64,000 bases of DNA from Zygnema circumcarinatum SAG 698-1b (GCA_037447605.1 CM074812.1:682001-746000); one strand, 5' to 3'; shown: positions 19,672 through 36,472, counted from the first letter of the stretch. The notes: generated by a model from the letters alone, not told the origin. Made by a program: numbers and translations.

Positions 19672-19846
19672 TAAACCCCTAAAATCCCTACAAACCCTTA
19701 AACCCTAAAAACCTTAAAACCCTAAAATCCTTAAACCCTGAAACCCTTAAACCCTTAAACCCTTAAAACCATAAAAACCCTAAAACCCTCGAACCCTAAA
19801 GCCCTAAAACCCTTCAACCCTACAAACCCTAAAACCCTAAAACCCT
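19672..19846. repeat. Degenerate interstitial telomere-like (CCCTAAA/CCCTAAAA) array
   Basis: Tandem aaccctaaaa/aacccttaa units. Confidence 0.8.
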
Positions 19847-22417: not shown

Positions 22418-25400
22418 CTACGTCCCCTCCTCACGTGTCAGCCTTTGCCCCTTAAACTTCCCCGAACTGAGACTCAATTCAGTGTCACATTTCAGCCAAT
22501 CCATGCTGCCAGGCTCCGCCCTCGTCTGTTTGTGCTGAGCGGCAGCCTCGCTCTGAGGCACGAGAGAGAGAGAGACTGACTCCCTCCCTAAGGGAGGGCC
22601 ATCTCTCGTCCAAAGCTTCTCTGCCTCTGTACCGCCACTCCCCTTCGCCTTCCCTTCACACGCTGACCGTTTCTCCGCTCCGTTGAGGGCCAAAGTGAGG
22701 TCGGTCTCAGTGGCATCCGAAGGGAGGCCCTCCGGCTTGTCCAATGAATGCTTGCCAGCTGGACCGCCAAGTGGACCGCCAGCTGGACCGCCACCGCCAG
22801 GTGGACCGCCAGGTGGCATTGGCGGTCCAGACTCCATGCCAGGTGTCGTCTTCGGAGGGAGCCCAGCTGACATTCTGACCGGCAGGCTCCGGATTCGCGC
22901 CACGTGGCTGCTTCCGCCCGCTCCCCCATTGACCACTCTCTGCCGGCGCAGACTCATCATCCGCGACTCATCCTGCAGCCGCCACGTGGCCTCCAGAACG
23001 AGCTGCCCCTCCCTCCCCACCCGCTCCTCCACCATCTTCTCCGCATCCTTTGCTGACATGGCAGTCTTCTCCTTTGCTGACGTGGCAGTCTTCGCCTTTG
23101 CTGACGTGGCAGCACCTCCATGGCCCTGCTCTTGCCTTGACCCCACCATTTCCGCCGGCTTTGACCGCTCTCCCTCTGCCGGAAAATTCCTTCCAAACAA
23201 GCGAACAGTGGTGGGGCATCCAGATGGACCCCTGCCACTCTCAACCACTCGTGCTGCGCCACGTGTCACCGCACTATTGGATGGAGAGGCATACTCCAAG
23301 CTCCCTGCATTGGCAGCCATGGCTGCCGGACTTGGTCCTCCCTCGCCTTCCGCCATGGAACTCCGTTGACTGCTGCCCTCTGAGGGAGGAGGAGGAGGAG
23401 GCTGAGGGAGAGGGAGAGGGAGAGGGAGAGGGAGTCTCCTTCCCGGCTCGGGGGGTTCATATCCCGAAACTGAACCCATAACTGAACCCATAGGTCGACC
23501 GGCAGCCATTTGAGCTGCGGGAAGAGAGGGCTCTAATGGTCCTCTCCCTCCTGCTCTCACTACCCCTCCATTGCTCTCTCTCCGAGTCTGCCCCTGTTGG
23601 GGTTTAAGAGCAGCTGTAACTGCAGCTTCTGCCCTCTGTTGTATCCGTAGAAAACGTTGCAATTGAGGGTTTTCTATGCTTTCTAAATCCCCTATTTCAA
23701 GAAGTCTGGCAGAGCCCCTTGGTTGAGAAGTCGCACGGAGTTTGAATTCCGGACTCATTCCTTCTGTAGACACTTGCAATGGCAGATTTCCAGCAATTGT
23801 TAAACCCTGCTTGGAAGAAATTTTTCCACTCTTCGGATCCACTTTTTTCTGCTGCGATCCCACATCGTTTTGCCTCACCCCTCCACTTAACCTTGTCAGG
23901 AAACCACTAGTAAGCCCCCCCCCTACATCATCTTTTTTCTGCAATTTTCCCGTTCCCTGACTACTCTGCATATTCTGACTTGCAGAGGCAAAAACTGTGC
24001 CTGTCCCTTTCAGTCCCACCATCTGCGTGTTCCCTGTTGCAGTTCCGTCGCAATTTACGGAACTGCCGACGGGTTTTCCATGCTCGCTTCCCACAGCTTG
24101 TACTATAGAGATACCTTGACCAGCATCCTCTGTTTTCTTCCCGGGAGAATCTTCTTCTCCATCGACGAGAATGGGACGTAAAATTGAGGACCCATGCTGC
24201 ACATTTGGAACAGAATGCGGAAATCCATCATTAGCAATTTGTCGCGGGCTTAATCCCACAGTGAAAACTCTTTCATGCTCCGGAATTTCCACTAGTTTAA
24301 ACATGCGTTCCACTGTGCCCCCTCCTCCTCCTCCTCCCCTTATTTGGGATAAATGGTTTCTGGCAGGCAGGGGGAGGTTTTCACTCCCACTCCCACTCCC
24401 ACTCCCTCCCGACCCACTCCCACGTGACCTCTCACAAAAGCTTGGGGGGTTGCTCAGGGCTACTCCTCCAACTGCTCCTCCTACACTGTCTCCTCTTCCT
24501 CCTCCCACTACTCCCACTCCTTCAGCTGCTCCTAATACACTCTCTCTTCTGCCTTCTCCCACTGCTCCCACTCCTCCTACCGCTGCAACTGCTCCCCCTA
24601 CATTGTCTCCTCGGCCTCCTCCCACTGCTCCCACTCCTCCAATTGCTCCTCCTATACTGTCTCCATTGCCTCCTCCCACTACTCCCACTCCTTCCACCGC
24701 TCCAAATGCTTCTCCCGCTCCTGCCCTCCTCCATTCTACTGCTCCCACTGCTCCTCCTACTCCACCTGCTCCACTTACACTCCCTCTACCTCCTCTAACT
24801 GCTCTCACTGCTCCAAATGCTCCTGCTACAACTGCTCCACTTGGAATCCTTCCTCTACCGGCACTCCCTCGTCTACCTGCTCCACCTACTCCTGCTCTTG
24901 CCCTCCCTCTTCTACCGGCACTCCATCCTCTAGCGGCCCTCCCTCCTCTATCTGCTCTACCTACTCCTTCATCTCCAGCTGCTCCTCCTGCTTCACTCCC
25001 TCCTCCTCCTGAACTCCCCCCTCTACCTCCTCCTCCTACTCCTACTCCTCCACCTTCACTCCCACCTCTTCCTGCTCCACCTCCTCCCACCACTCCAACT
25101 GCTCCTTCTACACCATCTCCTCCCACTCCTTCTGCTCCCTCTCCCTCTCCTCCCTGCCCTCTCTCCGTCGCAACCCCCACTACTCGGTTCACCCTCACTG
25201 CTGTCCCATACCCTAACCCCAACCCCCCATACCAATGGGCCGAAGTCGCTCTCCCTCCTCCCGCGGGACTCTGCATCTCTCTCCCTCCCTGCCCTCCTCC
25301 CACAGAGCCTGGAGAAGCAGGAACGTTATATGACCCTCCCATCATCCTGCTCCCTGAATTCCACTCTCTACTTAACCCTCTTTGCTCACCCTCCTCAGCA

Positions 25401-28400
25401 CTCCCATCTTGTGGGGTTAGCACCTGCATGTTTCCTGTGCCCATAGCCTCCCCTGCACCACTTCCCTTTTGCTTTCGTAGCGACATAGGGCCCGAACCCC
25501 TCGGCCTTATAGCTAGTTTAGCCGGTCTTTTGGCAGTTACAGTTCCGTTACAAACTGAATGTACTCCTGTCAGAAATGGGTTGTTAGGGCAAGCCATGGC
25601 TGCCAATCCTCCTCCTCCTCCACTTCTCTGCTCAGGAGGGATAAACATGCTCTGTCTATCTTCCTCTCTCTCTCTCGATCCTGAAGGTTGATTTTGCAGC
25701 ACCATTTGTAAAGGTCTTGCAGGCATTCCCGACGCTTCCATAGACCGATTCGGAACTGAAAGTGAGGAGTTCTGTGTTGCAGCAGCTGTCCTAACAGACT
25801 CCTCAGGGAGCATCATACTTTGAGGGTTCAGATCAGATTTCTTGCCCTTTTTTGATACATCTAATCTCAAGACCTGTCCTGCAGAGTTATTTTTATAGGC
25901 TGCCATCCCCAGGAGCGGCGTCTCTCGTCCCTCCTCACCCCTCTCTCTCGCTCTCTCTCCTCTCCTTCCAACTGTCCCACTCAAATAAACATTCTCTCCC
26001 AAATTCGCTCCTTCTGCTCTTTTCCCCCGATTATCAAGGCCATGCTGATGATCTCTCCGGTTTCCAGGAGCCCTATTCCTGTCAAAGGTTACTTTGCCAT
26101 TCTTCGCAGAATTCATCTGTTCTGTCTCCTCTCCCTCTCTCTCCCTTTCTCTCTCCTCTTCCTCATCCGAACTTCCTGCCCCTTCAAAGCCCGGAGCTGC
26201 TAAGCCCAGCACAACGTCCTTCATTACTTTCTGCGATATTATAACATCCATTGAAAGTCTTTGGCTGACTTTCTTCATGACAATACCTCCAACACCCAAA
26301 ATACCATTCTTCTTCTTCTCTCCCCTTTCCTCCTCCTCCTTCCTCCCTCTCCTTCTGCTTCCAACAATTGCCTTTTCCTTTGCCCTCAAAACCTCCTTCC
26401 TCCCTCCATCCTCTTTGCCCTCCTCCCTCCTCTCCAGGTCTCCCTGAAGGCCAAGCACTTCTCCCTCCCTTTTTCCTTTTTCTCGTAAACTTTCCATTCT
26501 TTCTGAATTAGTAAGTGATTCCTTACAGCCTCCACATGTGCTACATTCTCCTTCACAACAAGTGTCCATTTCCTTTCGCTTACAACCACATATCCGCAAT
26601 TGCCGTTTCCCAGCCTCCTCTCCTTTATCACCTACCAAACAAGCGTTAAATAACACATCTTCTTTTGCATTCCTCTCCCGCACCTCTCCCTCCGCTCCCC
26701 CCCTCCCTTTTCCTCCTTCTCCCACCACTGTTGTCCCAGATTTCCCCTCACTCTCCCCCTTCCTTTCCATTAACCCCTCTCCCACAACATCATTCTGAAC
26801 CCCCCCCAAGCGGTGCTCAGAGGCTCTCTCTCCCTCTCTCCCTCTGCTTACCTCTACCAGCCCATTGCCCTTCTCCCCTCCCACACCTTCTCCTTTAGCT
26901 CCTCCCTCCTCTCCTGACCCCCTACCCTCCCCTCTCTCTCTCTCTCTCGCTTTCTTCTCTCCCGCAGGCACTCCTCCCTTCAGAGTGGTCTGGCCAAGCC
27001 CCAATTTATGGATCCTGATTGGCTTTTCCTTTCTCCTCCTCTTCATTTCGTCAGAAAATCTGAGCTTCTCCTTCACCCCCCAATCGCGTATCTTTCCGAC
27101 CCTTCGAATTTCCGAATTTCCGATTTTTCCTAAGTTCTGCGACCAGCCTTGCTGATAACTCTCCTCGCCGCTGTCCTAATTCCCAACTCCACATTCATTG
27201 AAAAGGCAAGTAAGAAGCAAGAAACCGACAGGAGACAAGTCTTTACAAAAGCTTTCTAAGCCTTCAAGCAATACTTACTTGCCATATCACTCTTTACAAC
27301 ATATAAAGAAGTCACTATTCCTGTGCTGTCGAAACCAAGATAGATACCACAACATTCAATTGAACTTCAGGGCAGAATGAATCGCAGAGATTTATCCATT
27401 GCTTGGTAAACTCCCAAGATACTTACTCGAAATTTCTTTTTATTCGCTCTAAACTCCTTTTCTGCACTGCTTTTGCGTCCCCACAACCTCCTTTCTTTCT
27501 CACTCCTTCTTGCGATTCCTTTCACCAGCGGTAAGGGCAAAGTCTCCAAGTCTTCCTGCACCACTTCCCTATTCTCTCTCTTTCCCCTCACACAATCATT
27601 ACTCTCAGGCATGCTCCCTCCTTCAGTAAATTTTCTCCTCTTCCTCCTCTCCCCTCCCATCCCCTCCAGATCTTCATCTTTCTCCCTCTCTCCGCTTCCC
27701 TTTCCATTGTCCTTTCCCTCTGCCTCTCCATCTCTCCCCTCTCCATCCTTCCCACTATTCTCCTCTCCTTCCTTACTACTACTACCTCCCTTTTCACTAC
27801 CTCCTTTCTGTGCCTCCATCAAACGTCGAGTTCGTTTCTTTGTGGATACAAATGCAACTCCGTTCCATTTCTCCGTTCCCTTCTTCTTGCCTACAGTCTG
27901 CTGAAGCTGAGTCTTTCCCCTCTCCCACTTCCTCTCCCTTTCCTCCCTCTCCCTCTCTGTCTCCTTCTCCGTCCCTTGCCTCCCCTGCGTTTTGTGCCCC
28001 CTCCTTACCTTCCTCACCTTGAAACACAGATCATCATTGTCTATCTCTAGACTTGCCGGCTTAATCGGTTGCCCATAATCAGACTCCTTCCTTTTCGCCC
28101 TCCTGTATATGTCAGCCATACTTCTATACTTTTGTATTTTTGGCTCTGCTGGAAACTTGAGAGCTCCATCCTCTCTCTCATTAATATCAACAGAGTCCTC
28201 CCCCCCACTCCCACCTTTCCTTCGAGATTTCTCCTTCCCTTCTACTTCGCTTTCCAACTCTTTCTCCTCTCTGTCCCTTTCGTCCCCTTCAGCTCCTCGT
28301 TCCTTTTCCATTTCCATATCTATGCCCTCATTCCCCTCATCCTCTTCTTTTCCGTCCATATCTTCCTTCTCTCCATCCTTCTCTCCATCCTTTTCCACCC

Positions 28401-31400
28401 GACCCATATATCTTCTCATCATCCTTGATACAGACCATCTTCCTCTCCCCCTACGCAAGTGTAGGGGTCCCTTCTCTGTTGACGTGTATTCTATGGGAGC
28501 CTCCATCTCACTCTCAATCTTTCCCTCCCCACGTTTTTCCTCCTCTCTCTCCTCCTCTCTCTCCTCCTCATCTACCTTCTGAAGGCTATTCCTTTCCCCC
28601 CATCCGCCATTTCTCTTCCCCTTGAATACCGGTATTTTACTTCTCTGCCTCAATGTCCCCCTATCTCTAGGTAACACCTTATCTAAGCACCTATTAGTGT
28701 GAGCATTCAAGCTCACACTTGAAGCTGACGAGAACTTTTTGCAGACTGGACACATTCCTCCCCCCATCGCCTGCAATATTATAGCAGCTTCAGCGGTCAT
28801 TTCTTCCACAGCACTCCCTCCATTGCTGTCTTTATCGTTCCCAATTTGTCGACAAGTTAAGTTAGCTCCCATTTGGGGACTGAAATCTTTACCATTGCAG
28901 GAAGAGGCCAAAAGCAAAGAGACTCCTCCTTGCTCTGCATCCTCCTCCCCCTGAATCACTCTCCCTCCATTCAAATCTCCTTCTCCCACGGTGATAGCTT
29001 TATCACGAGGGGGTATGTCCAGAGAAAGACTTTGCAAACCGAAATCAATAGCAGGTGGCAAGGTCATTGGCGGAAGTTGATCCGCATCGATTTCAATCTG
29101 TCCAGTTTCTGCATCCCCGAGGGACAATCTGTACCTTTTTGTCGCCCGTATTTCAGCGACAAGGTTTCTGCAAAAGACCACCAAAAGACCTTCAGTCAGT
29201 TTTCATGTACGGCAGCAGTACCCAACACAGCTCCTCAGATAAATCTCAAATTCAGTATATTTCTTTACATAAGCAAGTCAAGTTCAGCCAAGACTACCTA
29301 AGCTAAGCTACCTTCAACTGCGATAATTCAGAGGTTTAGTTCTTTCTGCCCAGCATTGCCACCGTTTCTTCTTGCATGCCTTCATTCTTATGGTCACAAA
29401 GGCCATTTCATTATTCTCTGCAAAAGGCGGACATTCACACACGCGTCTACATATTCTATTCGCGAACTCCACAAATTTGAGATTGAGCATTCACATCGAT
29501 GTCCTCAGACACTAACACAATGAAGGAACGAAGAAACCCTAAACCTCATCTTGGAGTGTCTGACTTCGCAATGCGAACTTTGAACTTTGCGGCTTTGTTC
29601 AAAACAACTCACGTATGGAATACAAAGAAATTGAGCTCAAAGTTCGTACGGAGGTTAAATGCGAGTAAAGCGGGATCCAAGAGTTACATCGAATGCCGTT
29701 CAAATGATGCAAACCCATTTCTCATACAGCGCACAATTCCTTCAATTCCTCTACGAGTAATTTGCAACAGTCTCAAACAAACAAAGTATCACTATTATAA
29801 CATTCGCTGTCAGCAACTCAGACTGGAGTTGGAGTAATAAATAAGAGATCATTGGCCCGATCAAATTCTTGAAAGCCTTCGGTCTTTGGGGCTTTAAGGA
29901 TTTAGGGTTTTAGGGTTTTTAGGGTTTGTGACTCTCATACGCAGCGAAAGGGCTTGAAGATGTCCACCGACATTGGTATCACGCTTTGGAAGGGACAGTA
30001 CGTGGGGTTCAAAAAATGGCAAGAGGAAAGCGAATGGTGGAGGAGTGTGCCTTTCATTTACGAAAAGTCTATGACCAAATGTTGTACCCTTGTTAAAAAA
30101 AGGGTTTTTCGTTGAAATTGAGGTCGAGCACGACTGCCTTCACACACCACACGCGGTACGTAATAGAGAGTGCGCGACAAAACACAAACTAAGACGAGAC
30201 TTGTCTGACAGGAAACCCCCATAGTCCTTCCTAAAAACCCTAAAAACCCTATAATATGCTCTACCGGGGTTAAACTCGAGAGCGCCCTGCCTCGGGCAGA
30301 GATGCCTCTTGAATGGCTTTACTTCCAACACATCATGTTGGCTTCAAAAAATGCCCTTCAAACGGTATGAGCGACGTCAGCATGCGTCACGTCCCACAAG
30401 TCATCATGAAGGCCATGGAAGTGACGTGACGTGATGTGACAAAGTTGGAACAGCTCGCTACATGGTGTAGGAAGAGACAAGTCATGGCGATAGCACCCAC
30501 GCGTGACAACCGTCACACGCGCAGTTTCATGAAGTTGTAGACCTGGGAGGCAGTATTAGAATAGTCGCCAAACTCAAAAAAGAAGGTGTATGATGCAAAA
30601 TAAGGTTCGTAGAAAAGATTTCCCAAAACTGTAAGTGGGCAAAGTCCCTGTAAAAGGCAAAACAGGCATGATCCAACATTTCATCTTTGACACATTTAGC
30701 GCAAATGTTGACAATCCCAATGATGTGATATTCAAAGACGCACAGAAGGTTGCATTGACAATAGGTCAACATATGGTAACCCCTAAACCGCAAACCCTGA
30801 ATTCTAACCCTAAACCCTAACCGCAAGGCGTGTCAATGGCAAGTAATGGAGGGAAAAAAGTGACGATCAGGGCGAGAATGAACGGCGGCACAGGCGATGT
30901 CGGGCATGAGGAACAAGTTCCGGTTCCGACTCGTCAGTTGAACGCGGGTCAGATATCTACGTTACAGGTATCCAAGATAGAGCAGCAGAATGAATGGATG
31001 GATGGATGGGTTTCACCCTCCTATGTTTGACGGTAAGGGTTCTGAGTACAAATGGGTACATCAAGAGAGAGTATTGAAATGGAATCAGATGGGACGGGAT
31101 GGAATGGCCATAAGAGGGAGAGCGAGAGGGACAAGGAGAAGGAGAGGACGAAGTTGAGGGCGAGGGGAGCAAGTTAAGGTTTAGGGTTTAAGGTTTAGGG
31201 TTTAGTATTGAAGGTTTAGGGGTTCAGGGTTTTAGGTTTCACAACGCTCTATTTCTTAACTAATCAATTGGACAAGAGCAGGGGACGACTATGTTGGCGC
31301 AGGCACATTCTGTCTATACTCTCCATAGCGGCACCCTGCTACACTCGCAATCTTCACTAGTGAGAAAAACCGAAGTAATGAGATGAATGGTAAGGTTGTC

Positions 31401-33651
31401 ACGACTGAAATTGCCAAGTGCTTAGGAGTCTACCATAAGTTGACTTTCAAAAACTGTCATGGTGCAACGAGCTGCTTGTCGCGCATCCAACATGACATTT
31501 ACCCTGCTCACGCATCTTTCATTCTTCATAGCATACTACATAGGAGGTTTCACTTGCTTAATTTCATTGGCTTCAAGGCCCTACTTTGCCTCACTCGTGT
31601 GACATATGTCACTCGTGCCACTGCGGGCAGGAGTCCACTATCGTCCAAAGCAGTGCACATACCCTTCAATAGTGCTATCAAATTAGAAGCAGCACCTCAA
31701 TAAAGTGGTCAACAAACGAGGTCTTGTACAATGCAAGGAATGTGAACACAGTTCACGTGGTTGCAACACCGGTCACGTTAGTTTTGGATTGCTGAAAGGG
31801 GACTTGTAAATCATCGCACGCATTCTAGTGCAACTATCGGCGGCACTAATACAGATTTGGGTGCGGCATACACTTGGGAATCTAAGCCGTCAATTGCATA
31901 GGTATAAGGGCAACCAGGAATGATTGAAGAAGTTGCCCTTTACTGACGTTCATCTTACAACTGGCTCAATGTTAGAGGGAATGTGGATATCCGCTGTAGG
32001 AGTGAAGTCTTGATTTCAGTCTATCGATCAGCATGGAGTGGCTTTCGGCGTCAAGTTTTCAAGACCGCAAATTGATTTCCAGGGCAAACATTGGCCCACA
32101 TGGTTTTCCGGCACAATTGCGACCAACAGATCCAGTTTTGATTGTTTTCATGTGTTGAAACTTCAAACTTTATTGGCACCATTGTCTGACCACCGTGAAT
32201 GCTGAAACGTGATGATCCTCACGCGACATGTGTCACGTTATGTGTGTGACACGAACGAACGTTCGTATGGTTCTGTAACTCGTCGGAGCTTCATACGAAC
32301 CGTGGGGTTTAGCTTAAACCCTCAAGGTCAATCCGCAGCAAAGCGAGAGAGAGAGGACGAGAAGGCCAATAGATGGCTCTCAAGATCTGATGGGGTCTCG
32401 TTCACTGTGCACACATGATCGAAGGCCTTCAAGATTCAACTCCTGTCAATAAATAGACTAATGATGCCTACATACCTTAGACCCCGACAGGGTCGTCTAA
32501 CCTGCACAGCGAGTCAAGACACGCAATTGCTCTCTCCCAAACGAGTGCTTGTCACTTATCGACTGCACTCCCCCTCGATGCACTTGCCACTGCTAAACTT
32601 CATCTGAATCCAGCCATTCCTTGGCGCCAAGGAATCCTTTGCAGAGCTCATCTAAGCATGTTCAAGGGAAGTTCTGAAAGCTCACATCCCCACCTTCAAT
32701 AAAGCACTTGCTTCTGGTGCAAGCCACTACGATGGCATTCGAAGGTGCATCAGTCACCTTGCGATGCTGCATCACGGCATTTGTGAAAGCGAAAGTAGAA
32801 AGGCTCGACCTTTGTGGAGATACGAAAGCTAGTAAGTTTGTCATCGTTCGCTGTCTACGGGGAGCTTTCCTAACCCTCAGCAACTTTACACTTGGTATTA
32901 CAACGTAAGGGCGGAGATCTCCACTCTTTCAGAGTACGGATGACCCCGTGCGAAGTGATTGTGAAGACAGAATACACTTCATTACTATCAAAGGATTTAG
33001 AACGGAGTTGGATCCCTCTCTCTATTAAGCCCCTTGACAAATTCCTAACGCTCCGTACAAGCTGCCACTCACCTGAAGCCTAGGAAACCACAGTAAAACA
33101 CCATACCAGAAAGAGGCAGCATCTTACCGCATAGGCCGAATATTTGCATGATAATCAGTCGAGGCTGAGTCAGTCGAACTGCACAACTGAACTAGTAGAC
33201 AAGTGACTTGCACGTTGCCAGACATATCCTTGTGAACAGGGAACATGGGGAAGGGGGTAGACGAGGAAAAGAGAGAGAGAGAGGGAGAGAGCGGTAGAGA
33301 GGGAGGGGTTATTCACCGAATCCTGAAATGATCTGTTGTTTTCTCGCGATGGTCGTCGGCTGAAACCGTGACTGGGTGCGCCGAGTACAACTGTACATTG
33401 GGCGCATGGAGACGCTCGCTCGTAGAGGGGCTCCGTAGAACCGTCAACACATACTCCATGACGGAAGCTGCAAGGCTCGCCTCCTTCACATCCCCGCGCT
33501 CTTCGTCCGAAAGCCAAGGGGATACCCTCTGAGAGTAATTGAGAGAGAGATCCACTGCATAGAGCGGGTTGTTAGGAGGGCTAATTTGCTGTTTAGCCGT
33601 GAACTGGCATAGAACTTTTCGGTTCCGCGATACGCGCGCTGTGCCGTCCAT
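22418..33651 (-). CDS. EMF1/HAPLESS8-like nuclear protein with a UBZ-like C2HC zinc finger and repression motifs (~2,280 aa)
   Basis: Exons 33651-33317, 29167-27427 and 27175-22418 splice in frame and create DHFRIR|NLVAEIR, matching the family F-S-I/M-R-x-Y/F-V-A-x-x-R motif. Followed by LPPMTLP, CPVCKKFSSASSVSLNAHTNRCL, KYRSMADIY, VRLFGRNF and C-terminal DLTLAL / DTELSLS. Confidence 0.75.
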
Positions 33652-36472
33652 GGAGATGTGCTCCGTAGAGGGACATCTTTAAGCCTTCTGTTGCGCCCCT
33701 ACCATGCCCCCTCCAGATGCTTGAGGGCTTCCAGGGCTCGCCCTGTATCCGAGATACGCACCCCTCTCTATCTCTCACTTCCTCCCACCCTTTCCTGCTC
33801 TACCTCTCCCCCTCTCTCTCTCACTCCTCTCTCACTCCCTCTACCTCTCCCTCTCCCTCTCCCTCTCCCTCTCCCTCCCCCTCGCCATCTCCGAACCTGC
33901 CTCGCACGATTCGTGGTCGAGAGAGCCCGACGACGTGGAACTCGGGCAGATACAAAAATTGCGGGCAAACAACAGCGACCTGAACGGGCGCCACGAATGA
34001 ACGGGCAGCCCGAAACGTTTCACACCAGAAGCTGCCAGGCGGGCTCGCCCTGCCCGAGTTCCGACTTCTCCGGACAAGGCAATGGCGGCCAACCATTGGC
34101 TTCCACCCGCCCCTAGGCGTCGAGCGCCACGTGGTTGCTCGATCCTGATTGGCGGAGAGCCAAGACCGCACTAGCGAAATGTGGTCGTTTCGGCCGCTCC
34201 ACGACAAAACCCAGGGCGTACGACAACCGTCCGATCAGAGGCCGGATGGGATTGGGCACAGATCCGCCGTTCGATCTGATCTGCTCGTGTCGGTGGGGCC
34301 CCGGGCGGCAGCGGGGTTTTTTGTCGTTGATTTTGAGGATCGAACTATTTTGGGTGTCACCGTTAGATGTCGGCCGATATTTGAACCAATGGGAGGCGAG
34401 GGACCGCCTGCCACTGGGGGCTGTTGGGCGGCCGGGGGGGCGGAGCGGAACGGGAAATGCAACGGAGAGCATAGAACTCCTGGGGCAGGAGTACGGTTGG
34501 AGGCTGTCACGTCATGGCCGTTTGGGATCGGATCCAACCGCAGTGGAACATTGTCCAATGGGGAGTGGCCACGTATGTGAAATGTGTACGTGGCGTGAGG
34601 CTATTGGATAATGCCGCGGCTATAGTTGGCAAGAGAGATGGGGCTTTAGGAGGTGAGGCAGTTGCGGAGGGGACCAGATAGGGAGGTGGGGGGACAGATA
34701 ATGCGGGGGGGGGGTNNNNNNNNNNGGAGGGGCGGAGGGAGGGAGGGGGAGAGGGGGGAGGGAGGGAGGGAGAGGAAGCGGGAGAGGGAAGGGGGAGGGA
34801 AGTGGACGGGCAGGTGGTGAGGAAGTGGAAAGAGAGAGGGAGAGGGAGTGTGTGAGAGAGAGGAGCGAGAGAGGGAAAGTGAGTGAGAGAAACGAGGGAA
34901 GATAGAGAGAGAAAGCGAGGGGTTTGGCTGTTCAGGTTTGTGGGTTCTGTGAAGAGGATGGAGGGCCGAAAGAATTTAAAGTCACTTGTAAGATTTTTAT
35001 GGTTTTTTATTTAGGCCTTTTTTTGTAAGCACTTAGAACGTCAGGAAGGATGCCTACAAGTACTCTTTCACTTGGCGGCATAAAAAATCAACAAAGGAGC
35101 CAGTTTCACTATGCTTACGAGGGTTTATAGAAACTCATTATGTGTGTTTTAGGGTTTCATGTTCAACATATTCAAAAAGTTGAAGACCAGATTTTCAAGA
35201 TTGAATACGAACATGATAAAAACGTAGGCATTGTTGCGTTCACATTGGTCTTTGTTTCGTTCAAATTGAGGTTACATCACAATTGGAGGCAAAAAAGCAT
35301 ATTCCACACGTGTGAGGAACCTCTACATTGGAGGCTTCAAATGCCTGTCAACTATTCACTCAATTTGGACGGACTTTTGGTGTTCTTAAAGTGGAAATCC
35401 ATCGATGATCCAATCACAGCACAGCACTGCTTACGTGGCAAACATCCATTGGCTGAAGACATCCAAGATACAACGAGATTTAAAGAATCCAAATGATGAG
35501 GAAGCACACGTGTCAGCACGATGGCTGTTGCACATTAAGATTTGAACCAGAAAGCGAAAAAAGGAGACAACATCGATTACAGAATACACATCAATATAAT
35601 ACTGAGAGGTTATCCTAAAAACCCTAAAAACCCTAAATTCTGGCATCATTTCATGGAAGGTGGGCAGTCTAATGAAGCCCTCTCTAACTCACTCCCATTC
35701 GTCGCCCGCACACCCACCATCTCTCGCCTCCCTCTCAATCTCCCTCCTTTTCTTCCACCTTTCGCTTTCTCCCTGTCTCATTTTACACCTGCTCGCTCAT
35801 ACACTGCTCACCCCTCTCCCTCTGCTTCCCTAAACCCTAAAAACCCTATACTTCTGCCCTCTTCCGTAATTTCCTGTCCATTTCCGTACACTTGCACACA
35901 CCATTTGCCTCCTACCATCTCCCTCCCCTCGCCTCCACCTCCTTCCTCCGATCGCTCCGCCGTCTACTCTCTCTCGTCGTCTCCCGCAGCTCCCACACGA
36001 ACCCCCCCTCCTGCAATCCACACTCCCTTTCTACCCCACTCCCTTCCGCTCCCACTTCCTACCCCTCCCGCTTACTTCTCTCACCTCCCTCTACCTCCCT
36101 ACCTCTACCCCTTCCTCTCTCACACTCTCCTCCCCCTCTCATCTTCCACCGCCTCTCCTCTCCTCTCCCCTTCTCCCTCTCACTCACTACTCCCTCTCCC
36201 TCCCGTCTCCTCCCTCTCCCGCCCTACACTCCATCCCCTCTCTCTCCCACTCCTCCCTCGTACGGTCGTACACGGTCCTCTCCCGTCCCTCCGTCGCCCG
36301 CCCGGGCCCCGCCTGACGTCCGTACACGGCCCTTAGGGCCGTTGGCGCCGCACGGTTCGGATCCGATCTTGCCGACATAATCGGATTCAATTCTTCCAGA
36401 TTCGAATCGAGTCCATATCCAAATCAGAATCTTATGATTCGGTTCGGAGGTTACCGCGTTTTCCAGCCAATA

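Follow-up and report, generated by a model that had tools for sequence, protein, structure and literature searches.

In a 64,000-nucleotide stretch of the genome of the alga Zygnema circumcarinatum SAG 698-1b (GCA_037447605.1 CM074812.1:682001-746000; hereafter the window, with positions counted from its first letter) we identified on the minus strand, between positions 22418 and 33651, an expressed nuclear gene of three exons, which we propose is probably a divergent member of the EMF1/HAP8 family (PF28218) that predates the duplications producing EMF1, AT5G56240/HAP8 and AT3G58770. Predating these seed-plant duplications, it would therefore not be a strict orthologue of EMF1 or of any single one of the three groups. 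Membership in this family had been suggested in an earlier note prepared from the DNA sequence alone, and it is supported, at the level of the family, by a zinc finger block and by an intron position shared with plant members.

The earlier note had joined three minus-strand open reading frames (ORFs; 33313-33651, 27367-29184 and 22418-27076) into a single gene, and all three are present and united by spliced transcript contigs. Five sequencing runs, from one organism and two studies, were found to contain the stretch, and contigs of the runs X1, X2, X3 and X6 were placed on positions 27400-33399 only. The predicted splice sites are found where they had been placed (donor ATTCG/gtgaat at 33316 and acceptor ttttgcag/AAAC at 29168, the slash marking the exon boundary), and contigs from three runs of two studies (X1, X2 and X3) cross the predicted junction from 33317 to 29167, yielding the expected product DHFRI-R-NLVAEIR, in which the Arg derives from the split codon CG/A. 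The joint 29167/33317 skips 4,149 nt, its ends reading CT..AC on the plus strand and hence GT..AG on the gene strand, and in X1 it is anchored by 83 nt on its shorter side. In X1 the depth is zero across most of this first intron, and in X2 and X3 it falls from about 70 to about 12 inside it, from which we conclude that the runs are RNA. Contigs of X1-X3 span 27426-29167, save for short gaps at simple repeats, and all of them break at 27426; a 29-nt loose end in X2 maps uniquely to 27146-27174. This break and the loose end together place a second intron at 27176-27426, after which the third ORF continues the frame from 27175. This second junction (27427 to 27175) is an addition to the earlier note, which had left it unspecified. 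Contig 4 of X1 (1,068 nt, lying on 33317-33399 and running about 357 nt further) probably extends over the ATG and some 100 nt of leader.

The similarity to plant proteins is centered on the finger block of exon 2. Comparison by hhalign of a profile of 112 plant exon-2 equivalents with the algal exon 2 gave a match with a probability of 96.7% (E 3.5e-10) over 57 columns, beginning 35 residues ahead of the finger (CRQIG versus plant KKCRLIVKF) and continuing through it (QAMGGGM-CPVCKKFSSASSVSLNAHTNRCL versus SE.MASKV-CPVCKTFSSSSNTTLNAHIDQCL). Likewise, a hidden Markov model (HMM) of the plant finger block recovered the algal segment with 42 bits (E 4.6e-12) among the 1,283 six-frame ORFs of the window. 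The HAP8-like motifs that the earlier note had named do occur in the plant proteins retrieved here, namely CPVCKTFSSSSNTTLNAHIDQCL, R.RLMVDIY and LRLMGK. In an alignment with 19 plant finger segments the invariant residues C, P, V, C, F, N, A, H, C and L are all kept in the alga, which departs only at the nearly invariant I-D, replaced by Thr-Asn (28693-28698, minus strand; HTNRCL versus plant H[ILV]D.CL). An Asp occupies the second of these positions in all 19 plant rows, and the solved UBZ4 fingers of Pol kappa and RAD18 have [LV]-Asp there. The C-x2-C...H-x3-C ligand spacing of the UBZ4 type is retained, and we assign the finger to this type. An AF2 model of it displays a beta-beta-alpha arrangement of hairpin and helix (pLDDT 64-77); a Foldseek search with this model found no significant match, the UBZ fingers of WRNIP1, RAD18 and FAAP20 superposing at 1.2-1.6 A over 25-28 residues. 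The finger profile of the family as a whole, when compared with the PDB, matched the two UBZ fingers of Pol kappa (E 4.5e-6), RAD18 (0.028) and WRNIP1 (0.037).

Beyond the finger, the strongest support comes from the position of the first intron, which the earlier note had not foreseen. Read from both sides of the confirmed junction, the protein contains the N-terminal motif F-x-[ILM]-R-x-[FYL]-V-...-R. The N-terminus of Arabidopsis EMF1 (AtEMF1) does run, as stated in the earlier note, ...SISIDL...DHFSMRGFVAETR...CWPFS...LPTL (supplement of PMC6599366); its DHFSMRGFVAETR is identical to the algal DHFRI-R-NLVAEIR at 8 of 13 positions, and an L-P motif follows at a nearly equal distance in both. 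The genes of three family members were fetched and their introns located against the deposited proteins. In all five sequences compared, a phase-2 intron splits the Arg codon of the motif, namely in the alga (FRI-CG/gt..ag/A-NLV), guava P0005 (L001; NFSL-CG/gt..ag/A-EYV), banana P0105 (L003; NFSI-AG/gt..ag/G-DYV), Prosopis P0002 (L002; GFSI-AG/gc..ag/G-DYT, with a GC donor) and a metagenomic sequence (L021/L022; SFQI-AG/gt..ag/G-KFVSSIRS). Given that the background frequency of the pattern F.[LIVM]R..V in the window is only about 5e-5 per residue, it is very unlikely that the confirmed junction fell in that codon by chance. Furthermore, in the two HAP8 genes checked, those of guava and banana, the coding sequence is divided into exactly three exons and the second intron is of phase 0, as in the alga. 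The plant N-terminal module is modeled by AF2 as small and helical (pLDDT 73-81), and no fold in the PDB matches it.

The earlier note had named two outcomes that would refute it, a junction without spliced reads and searches failing to recover the family. Neither came about: spliced contigs cross the junction, and an exhaustive protein search recovered HAP8-family proteins. A phmmer search with residues 1-200 of exon 2 against 1.8 billion representatives returned seven matches (E 1.3e-5 to 7.9e-4), none of them below 1e-10 and none a self match. Six of the seven are plant proteins with a single series of motifs (FS[IL]R[DE]Y, WPF, LPP[FM], CPVC..F......NAHID.CL, R.RLMVDIY or KKRSIAEI[FL], and LRLMGK), four of the five that were looked up being NCBI angiosperm records; the remaining match (P0003), taken from an ENA assembly, is short and has two fingers. 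A search initiated with guava P0005 gathered 408 relatives, many of them labeled 'Hapless 8' or 'UBZ4-type domain-containing protein'; the subfamily of P0005 and P0007 bears both names in UniRef, and P0060 has PF28218 on record. In a language-model atlas the nearest neighbor of the same 200 residues is a Streptophyta cluster with PF28218 EMF1 (0.94, 204 shared features), and the third-nearest cluster carries zf_UBZ. Pfam gave no match on the three exon translations; the copy used was judged to be without PF28218 because the HAP8 proteins P0005 and P0007 were also blank in it. A word-index protein search with exon 2 was blank, without a self match, because low complexity swamps its words, and nothing above noise came from a sequence search of the PDB with exon 2 by itself. 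The word-index search with residues 940-1585 of exon 3 was also blank and without a self match, so the database holds no annotated protein of 872-2,774 aa bearing such a C-terminus.

A metagenome scan yielded 41 loci, all plant-type sequences of the family and probably host DNA, with no recognizably algal or bryophyte relative among them. Three loci are divergent. L021:2045-3654 and L022:439-1902 (ENA assemblies ERZ1034427 and ERZ1034409) represent a single-finger member with SFQI-R-KFVSSIRSIDFSKCWPF, MPQVCPVCLNFTSTSNTALNAHIDHCL and RKMRSMVEIC, which has the phase-2 Arg intron and the top identity to the algal finger block (44-45%), and L018 is a further divergent member with NPILRLMGKNL. Either L018 or L021/L022 might come from a non-angiosperm.

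Outside the finger the correspondence is uneven, and the statement of the earlier note that all of the motifs it named have counterparts holds in part: the finger is strong and the DIY and LPP motifs are marginal, but LRLMGK and S[IV]DL are non-significant. In hhalign comparisons the top local match of each piece other than the finger is nevertheless the motif that the earlier note had named, with weak support. HMMs of eight conserved HAP8 blocks were searched against all six-frame ORFs of the window. The DIY-block model placed the algal exon 2 second among the 1,283 ORFs (8.2 bits, E 0.12) at the expected place, and this match recurs in an alternative hhalign alignment; KYRSMADIY lies 209 residues past the finger versus about 45 in plants. 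When residues 1-60 of exon 2 were aligned by hhalign with the plant N-domain profile A2, the algal LPPMTLP came out as the best local match (Kd~LPPFq versus ADQLPPMTLP, P 0.021). An N-domain HMM matched neither exon 1 nor exon 2, and the LRLMGK block HMM found nothing on the gene. The patterns CP.C..N.H...CL, [RK].M.DIY and RL[FM]G[KR] are each found a single time in the 87,412 aa of window ORFs; every one of these occurrences lies within this gene, and they follow the order of the family.

Several observations weigh against the proposed placement. Its statistical strength is confined to the finger block, and all searches were run exon by exon, so that the N-terminal motif was not scored in one piece. 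WPF[SR], which lies about 18 residues past that motif and is invariant in 26 plant sequences, is absent, the alga having R-L-S-L-G-D. The best local hhalign match of the C-terminal part of exon 3 to the plant C-terminal profile (PSGCPTTVRLFGRNFP versus PSaSNPVLRLMGKNLM) has an E of 0.24, and that of YAVDLS to pevDL an E of 0.49, so that S[IV]DL is not significantly matched. The block HMMs for YIDANGTK, PIPGPPGSFLPSP (the PIPGPPG block), PCCC.RKER and LNYQESQ found no match on any exon. A match to KRNGGW sits on the opposite side of DIY from its place in plants, and some of the short matches must therefore be due to chance. The protein searches recovered no bryophyte, fern or other algal intermediate, although such blanks are not proof of absence. 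Finally, the Asp of the UBZ4 signature H-[ILV]-D-x-C-L contacts ubiquitin, and with Asn in its place ubiquitin binding by the algal finger may be weak or different.

These points raise the alternative of an unrelated long, disordered protein that came by a generic UBZ4 finger through domain shuffling or convergence, its remaining motifs being chance. UBZ4 fingers do occur in many unrelated eukaryotic proteins, and the weak or non-significant matches outside the finger block, along with the lack of WPF and of four plant blocks, would be in keeping with such a history. However, generic Pfam finger models produced no match in exon 2 at E <= 1, whereas the HAP8-specific block attained its 42 bits with similarity that sets in well upstream of the finger. 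Moreover, the confirmed junction interrupts the N-terminal motif at the codon and phase seen in four family members, which the shuffling of a finger would not bring about, and the motifs follow the family order. We hence hold this alternative to be very unlikely. The extent of the protein invites a different doubt, namely that the gene is real but shorter than modeled, with some part of the third ORF, such as 24462-25163, spliced out in frame, or that the locus is in decay. The three coding segments (335 + 1741 + 4758 nt) amount to 6,834 nt, or 2,277 codons and a stop, and the protein is of 2,277 aa provided that exon 3 holds no further intron. The transcript contigs examined by alignment cover the first 199 nt of exon 3, the plant relatives are shorter (1,200-1,500 aa), and the Gly/Ala/Val-rich tract consists of degenerate tandem repeats opposite a long antisense ORF, all of which would suit a shorter model. 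Against it, the frame of exon 3 has a single stop in 1,586 codons, versus 76 and 70 in the other two frames, and the repeat periods reported by TRF for 24462-25163 (15, 18, 21, 27, 33, 39, 45, 54, 63, 75 and 117) are all multiples of 3, as expected for a coding repeat. Additionally, X1 contains 0.46 of the words sampled from 24000-33700, where the exonic share is 0.55; as exons 1 and 2 alone would give only 0.22, most of exon 3 in this interval must be present as RNA. A shortened or decaying gene thus appears quite unlikely, and we retain the full three-exon model (Table 1).

Table 1. Features of the Zygnema EMF1/HAP8-like gene, in window coordinates
Feature	Position	Strand	Basis or remarks
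Upstream ORF	33593..33676	-	27 codons, out of frame, overlaps the main ATG; starts 25 nt ahead
Exon 1, coding part	33317..33651	-	ATG at 33651-33649; ends with DHFRI and CG of the split Arg codon
YAVDLS	33544-33561	-	Within exon 1
Intron 1	29168..33316	-	4,149 nt, GTGAAT...TTTTGCAG, phase 2 in Arg codon; joint in X1, X2, X3
Exon 2	27427..29167	-	1,741 nt; split Arg codon followed by 580 complete codons
N-terminal motif, second half (last Arg base and NLVAEIR)	29146..29167	-	Compared with AtEMF1 DHFSMRGFVAETR and plant FS[IL]R[DE]YVF.ARS
LPPMTLP, putative counterpart of plant LPPF/LPPM	29056..29076	-	hhalign
Finger block, CRQIG...QAMGGGM-CPVCKKFSSASSVSLNAHTNRCL	28684..28854	-	C2HC finger proper 28684-28752
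RSMADIY, putative counterpart of plant R.RLMVDIY / KKRSIAEI[FL]	28105..28125	-	Block HMM
Intron 2	27176..27426	-	251 nt, GTAAGT...AATTAG, phase 0; contig breaks and X2 loose end
Exon 3 to stop codon	22418..27175	-	1,585 codons; first 199 nt on the same X1 contig as exon 2
Gly/Ala/Val-rich tract, degenerate tandem repeats	24462..25163	-	TRF
VRLFGRNF, possible degenerate LRLMGK[DN][LV] counterpart	23183..23206	-	hhalign E 0.24
DLTLAL, EAR-like LxLxL motif near C-terminus	22685..22702	-	Pattern match alone

Exon 2 encodes NLVAEIR, LPPMTLP, the UBZ4-type finger, a low-complexity stretch of acidic and basic residues, RSMADIY and a basic cluster (RRKRRK), and the product of exon 3 is Gly/Glu/Arg/Lys-rich and mostly of low complexity, with basic clusters of the KRRRK type. 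Disorder-promoting residues make up about 75% of both exons, and the clusters RRKRRK and KRRRK could serve as nuclear import signals. A plus-strand ORF at 24171-25691 (506 aa, Pro/Thr/Ala-rich) was considered as a gene and rejected as the antisense shadow of the coding repeat in exon 3. At the other end of the gene, position -3 is occupied by A at the ATG of the upstream ORF and by T at the main ATG, whose +4 position is G; leaky scanning or reinitiation may be required for the long ORF to be translated.

The locus is also rich in repeats. CT-rich simple repeats in exon 2 (28538-28569 and 27919-27976) break the contigs and draw unrelated contigs of all runs, including X6, which accounts for false joints such as 28569/29900. 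This joint, along with 29928/31182 and 27734/27943, was rejected as a splice, the ends being non-canonical and lying at simple or telomere-like repeats. Intron 1 holds dispersed repeats and degenerate plant-type telomere arrays, (TTTAGGG)n, at 29900-29928 and 31174-31239, and such repeats are found elsewhere in the window at 19696, 20379, 30808, 35828, 54552 and 56555; a 14-mer of the repeat has 8 matches versus 0.01 expected. Contigs are 5-10 times deeper at these arrays than over the exons, and many of the contigs terminate there in chimeric joints, which suggests that the arrays belong to a dispersed repeat. Telobox-like repeats serve in Arabidopsis as sites to which TRB proteins recruit PRC2 (PMC8760139).

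With the HAP8/AT5G56240 group, as represented by P0005 of Psidium guajava and P0105 of Musa textilis, the alga shares the three exons, with the phase-2 Arg intron in F-x-[IL]-R and the phase-0 second intron, as well as the LPP motif and a very long and poorly ordered last exon. The finger is preceded in both by a C-R-x-I patch, and R.M.DIY, in the alga a putative counterpart, follows it. The single C2HC finger, CPVCK.FSS.S...LNAH...CL, is likewise common to both, 16 of its 23 residues being identical to the plant consensus. In contrast to this group, the alga lacks WPF, YIDANGTK, PIPGPPGSFLPSP, PCCC.RKER and LNYQESQ, has at most a degenerate LRLMGK, carries T-N instead of I-D in the finger, has an acidic/basic insert of about 190 residues between the finger and DIY, and is longer by about 800 aa, with Gly-rich tandem repeats. 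AtEMF1 (AT5G11530) resembles the alga in DHF-x-[MI]-R-x-[FL]-VAE-[TI]-R, in a putative S[IV]DL upstream of it and an L-P motif about 37 residues downstream, and in being long, charged and largely disordered; it differs in having CWPFS and KFRWW and in having no CPVC-type UBZ4 finger within its first ~470 residues. The algal protein unites an N-terminal motif of EMF1-like form with a single finger of the HAP8 type.

A two-finger subgroup (P0002 of Prosopis and P0004 of Arachis), for which we found no literature and which is perhaps the AT3G58770 group, corresponds to the alga in FSIR/DY with its phase-2 intron, in LPPM, and in the finger CPVC..F......NAHID.CL followed by KKRSIAEI[FL], of which the algal RSMADIY is a putative counterpart; it differs in its two fingers versus one and in its KCWPFS, KFKWW and PTMRLMGKDV. 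P0001, P0002, P0004 and P0006 all have two UBZ4 fingers, each followed by KKRSIAEI[FL], and P0001 and P0006 are versions of about 410 aa that end soon past the second finger. With the UBZ4 fingers of RAD18, WRNIP1, Pol kappa and FAAP20 the alga shares C-x2-C-x14-H-x3-C, the CPVC start, the N-x-H...CL end and, as modeled, the beta-beta-alpha fold; the repair factors have Asp where the alga has Asn, and nothing is shared outside the finger.

Based on these features, we propose that the product, which at about 2,277 aa is for the most part disordered, would keep the front third of the family layout, followed by a long, charged, Gly-rich tail, and could act in the nucleus as a chromatin-associated scaffold. 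Its N-terminal helical module might dock partner proteins, and the finger might dock on ubiquitin or on a ubiquitylated chromatin protein. By analogy with EMF1, for which multivalent binding of nucleic acid and chromatin has been reported (PMC8760139), the charged disordered tail may engage nucleic acid or chromatin multivalently. By its pattern, DLTLAL near the C-terminus resembles an EAR repression motif. Any repressive role of the protein, or one linked to Polycomb, would be an inference. Arabidopsis EMF1 associates with PRC2 and PRC1 and with BAH readers, and is needed for H3K27me3 at its targets (PMC8760139).

A competing view of the function accepts the gene as a true family member but takes the ancestral role to have been ubiquitin-dependent signaling in DNA damage or replication stress, the Polycomb role of EMF1 being a later novelty of seed plants. 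The resemblance of the family finger profile to Pol kappa, RAD18 and WRNIP1 mentioned above, and the low-rmsd folds nearest to the algal model, which are the UBZ fingers of WRNIP1, RAD18 and FAAP20, point in this direction, as does the absence of the CPVC finger from the first ~470 residues of AtEMF1, which would make EMF1 the derived form. The published function of the finger-bearing paralogues is limited to the pollen-tube phenotype of HAP8 (PMC4397884). On the other side, nothing in the protein points to DNA repair, as modules of the nuclease, helicase, RING or PIP-box kind are lacking; the alga has Asn in place of the Asp that is typical of UBZ4 fingers binding ubiquitin; and the only studied member, EMF1, acts with PRC2 and PRC1 (PMC8760139). 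We thus consider a repair ancestry unlikely, though it is a genuine alternative for the early function of the family. Equally tentative is our own suggestion that the ancestor of EMF1, HAP8 and AT3G58770 was already present in streptophyte algae as a ubiquitin-reading chromatin scaffold, with the N-terminal module, one UBZ4 finger and a charged tail, and that EMF1 lost the finger later; we offer it as a conjecture that may well prove wrong. If it is true, and if the finger reads H2A monoubiquitin (H2Aub), the family would be a plant link between the PRC1 mark and PRC2-associated factors; according to a 2021 review no PRC2-associated reader of H2Aub is known in plants (PMC8760139).

EMF1 is regarded as a Polycomb factor that is specific to plants and arose late, and the published range of the family is considerably narrower than the one proposed here. 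Berke and Snel (2015) described EMF1, AT5G56240/HAP8 and AT3G58770 as paralogues from the seed-plant ancestor with a shared conserved N-terminal part, and found no members in mosses (PMC4397884), and Huang et al. (2019) restricted EMF1 to eudicots (PMC6599366). The literature searched reports no members of the EMF1, HAP8 or UBZ4 family in algae or bryophytes, and InterPro may already list some under PF28218; a 2025 article in MBE (PMC11982613) makes no mention of EMF1. The gene also carries a warning for annotation, being invisible to ORF-based and domain-based gene calling and having no counterpart in the protein databases searched. An expressed algal gene with the N-terminal motif, an intron in the same codon and a HAP8-type finger would push the origin of the family back before land plants, and suggests an ancestral form in which an EMF1-like N-terminus occurred together with a UBZ4 finger.

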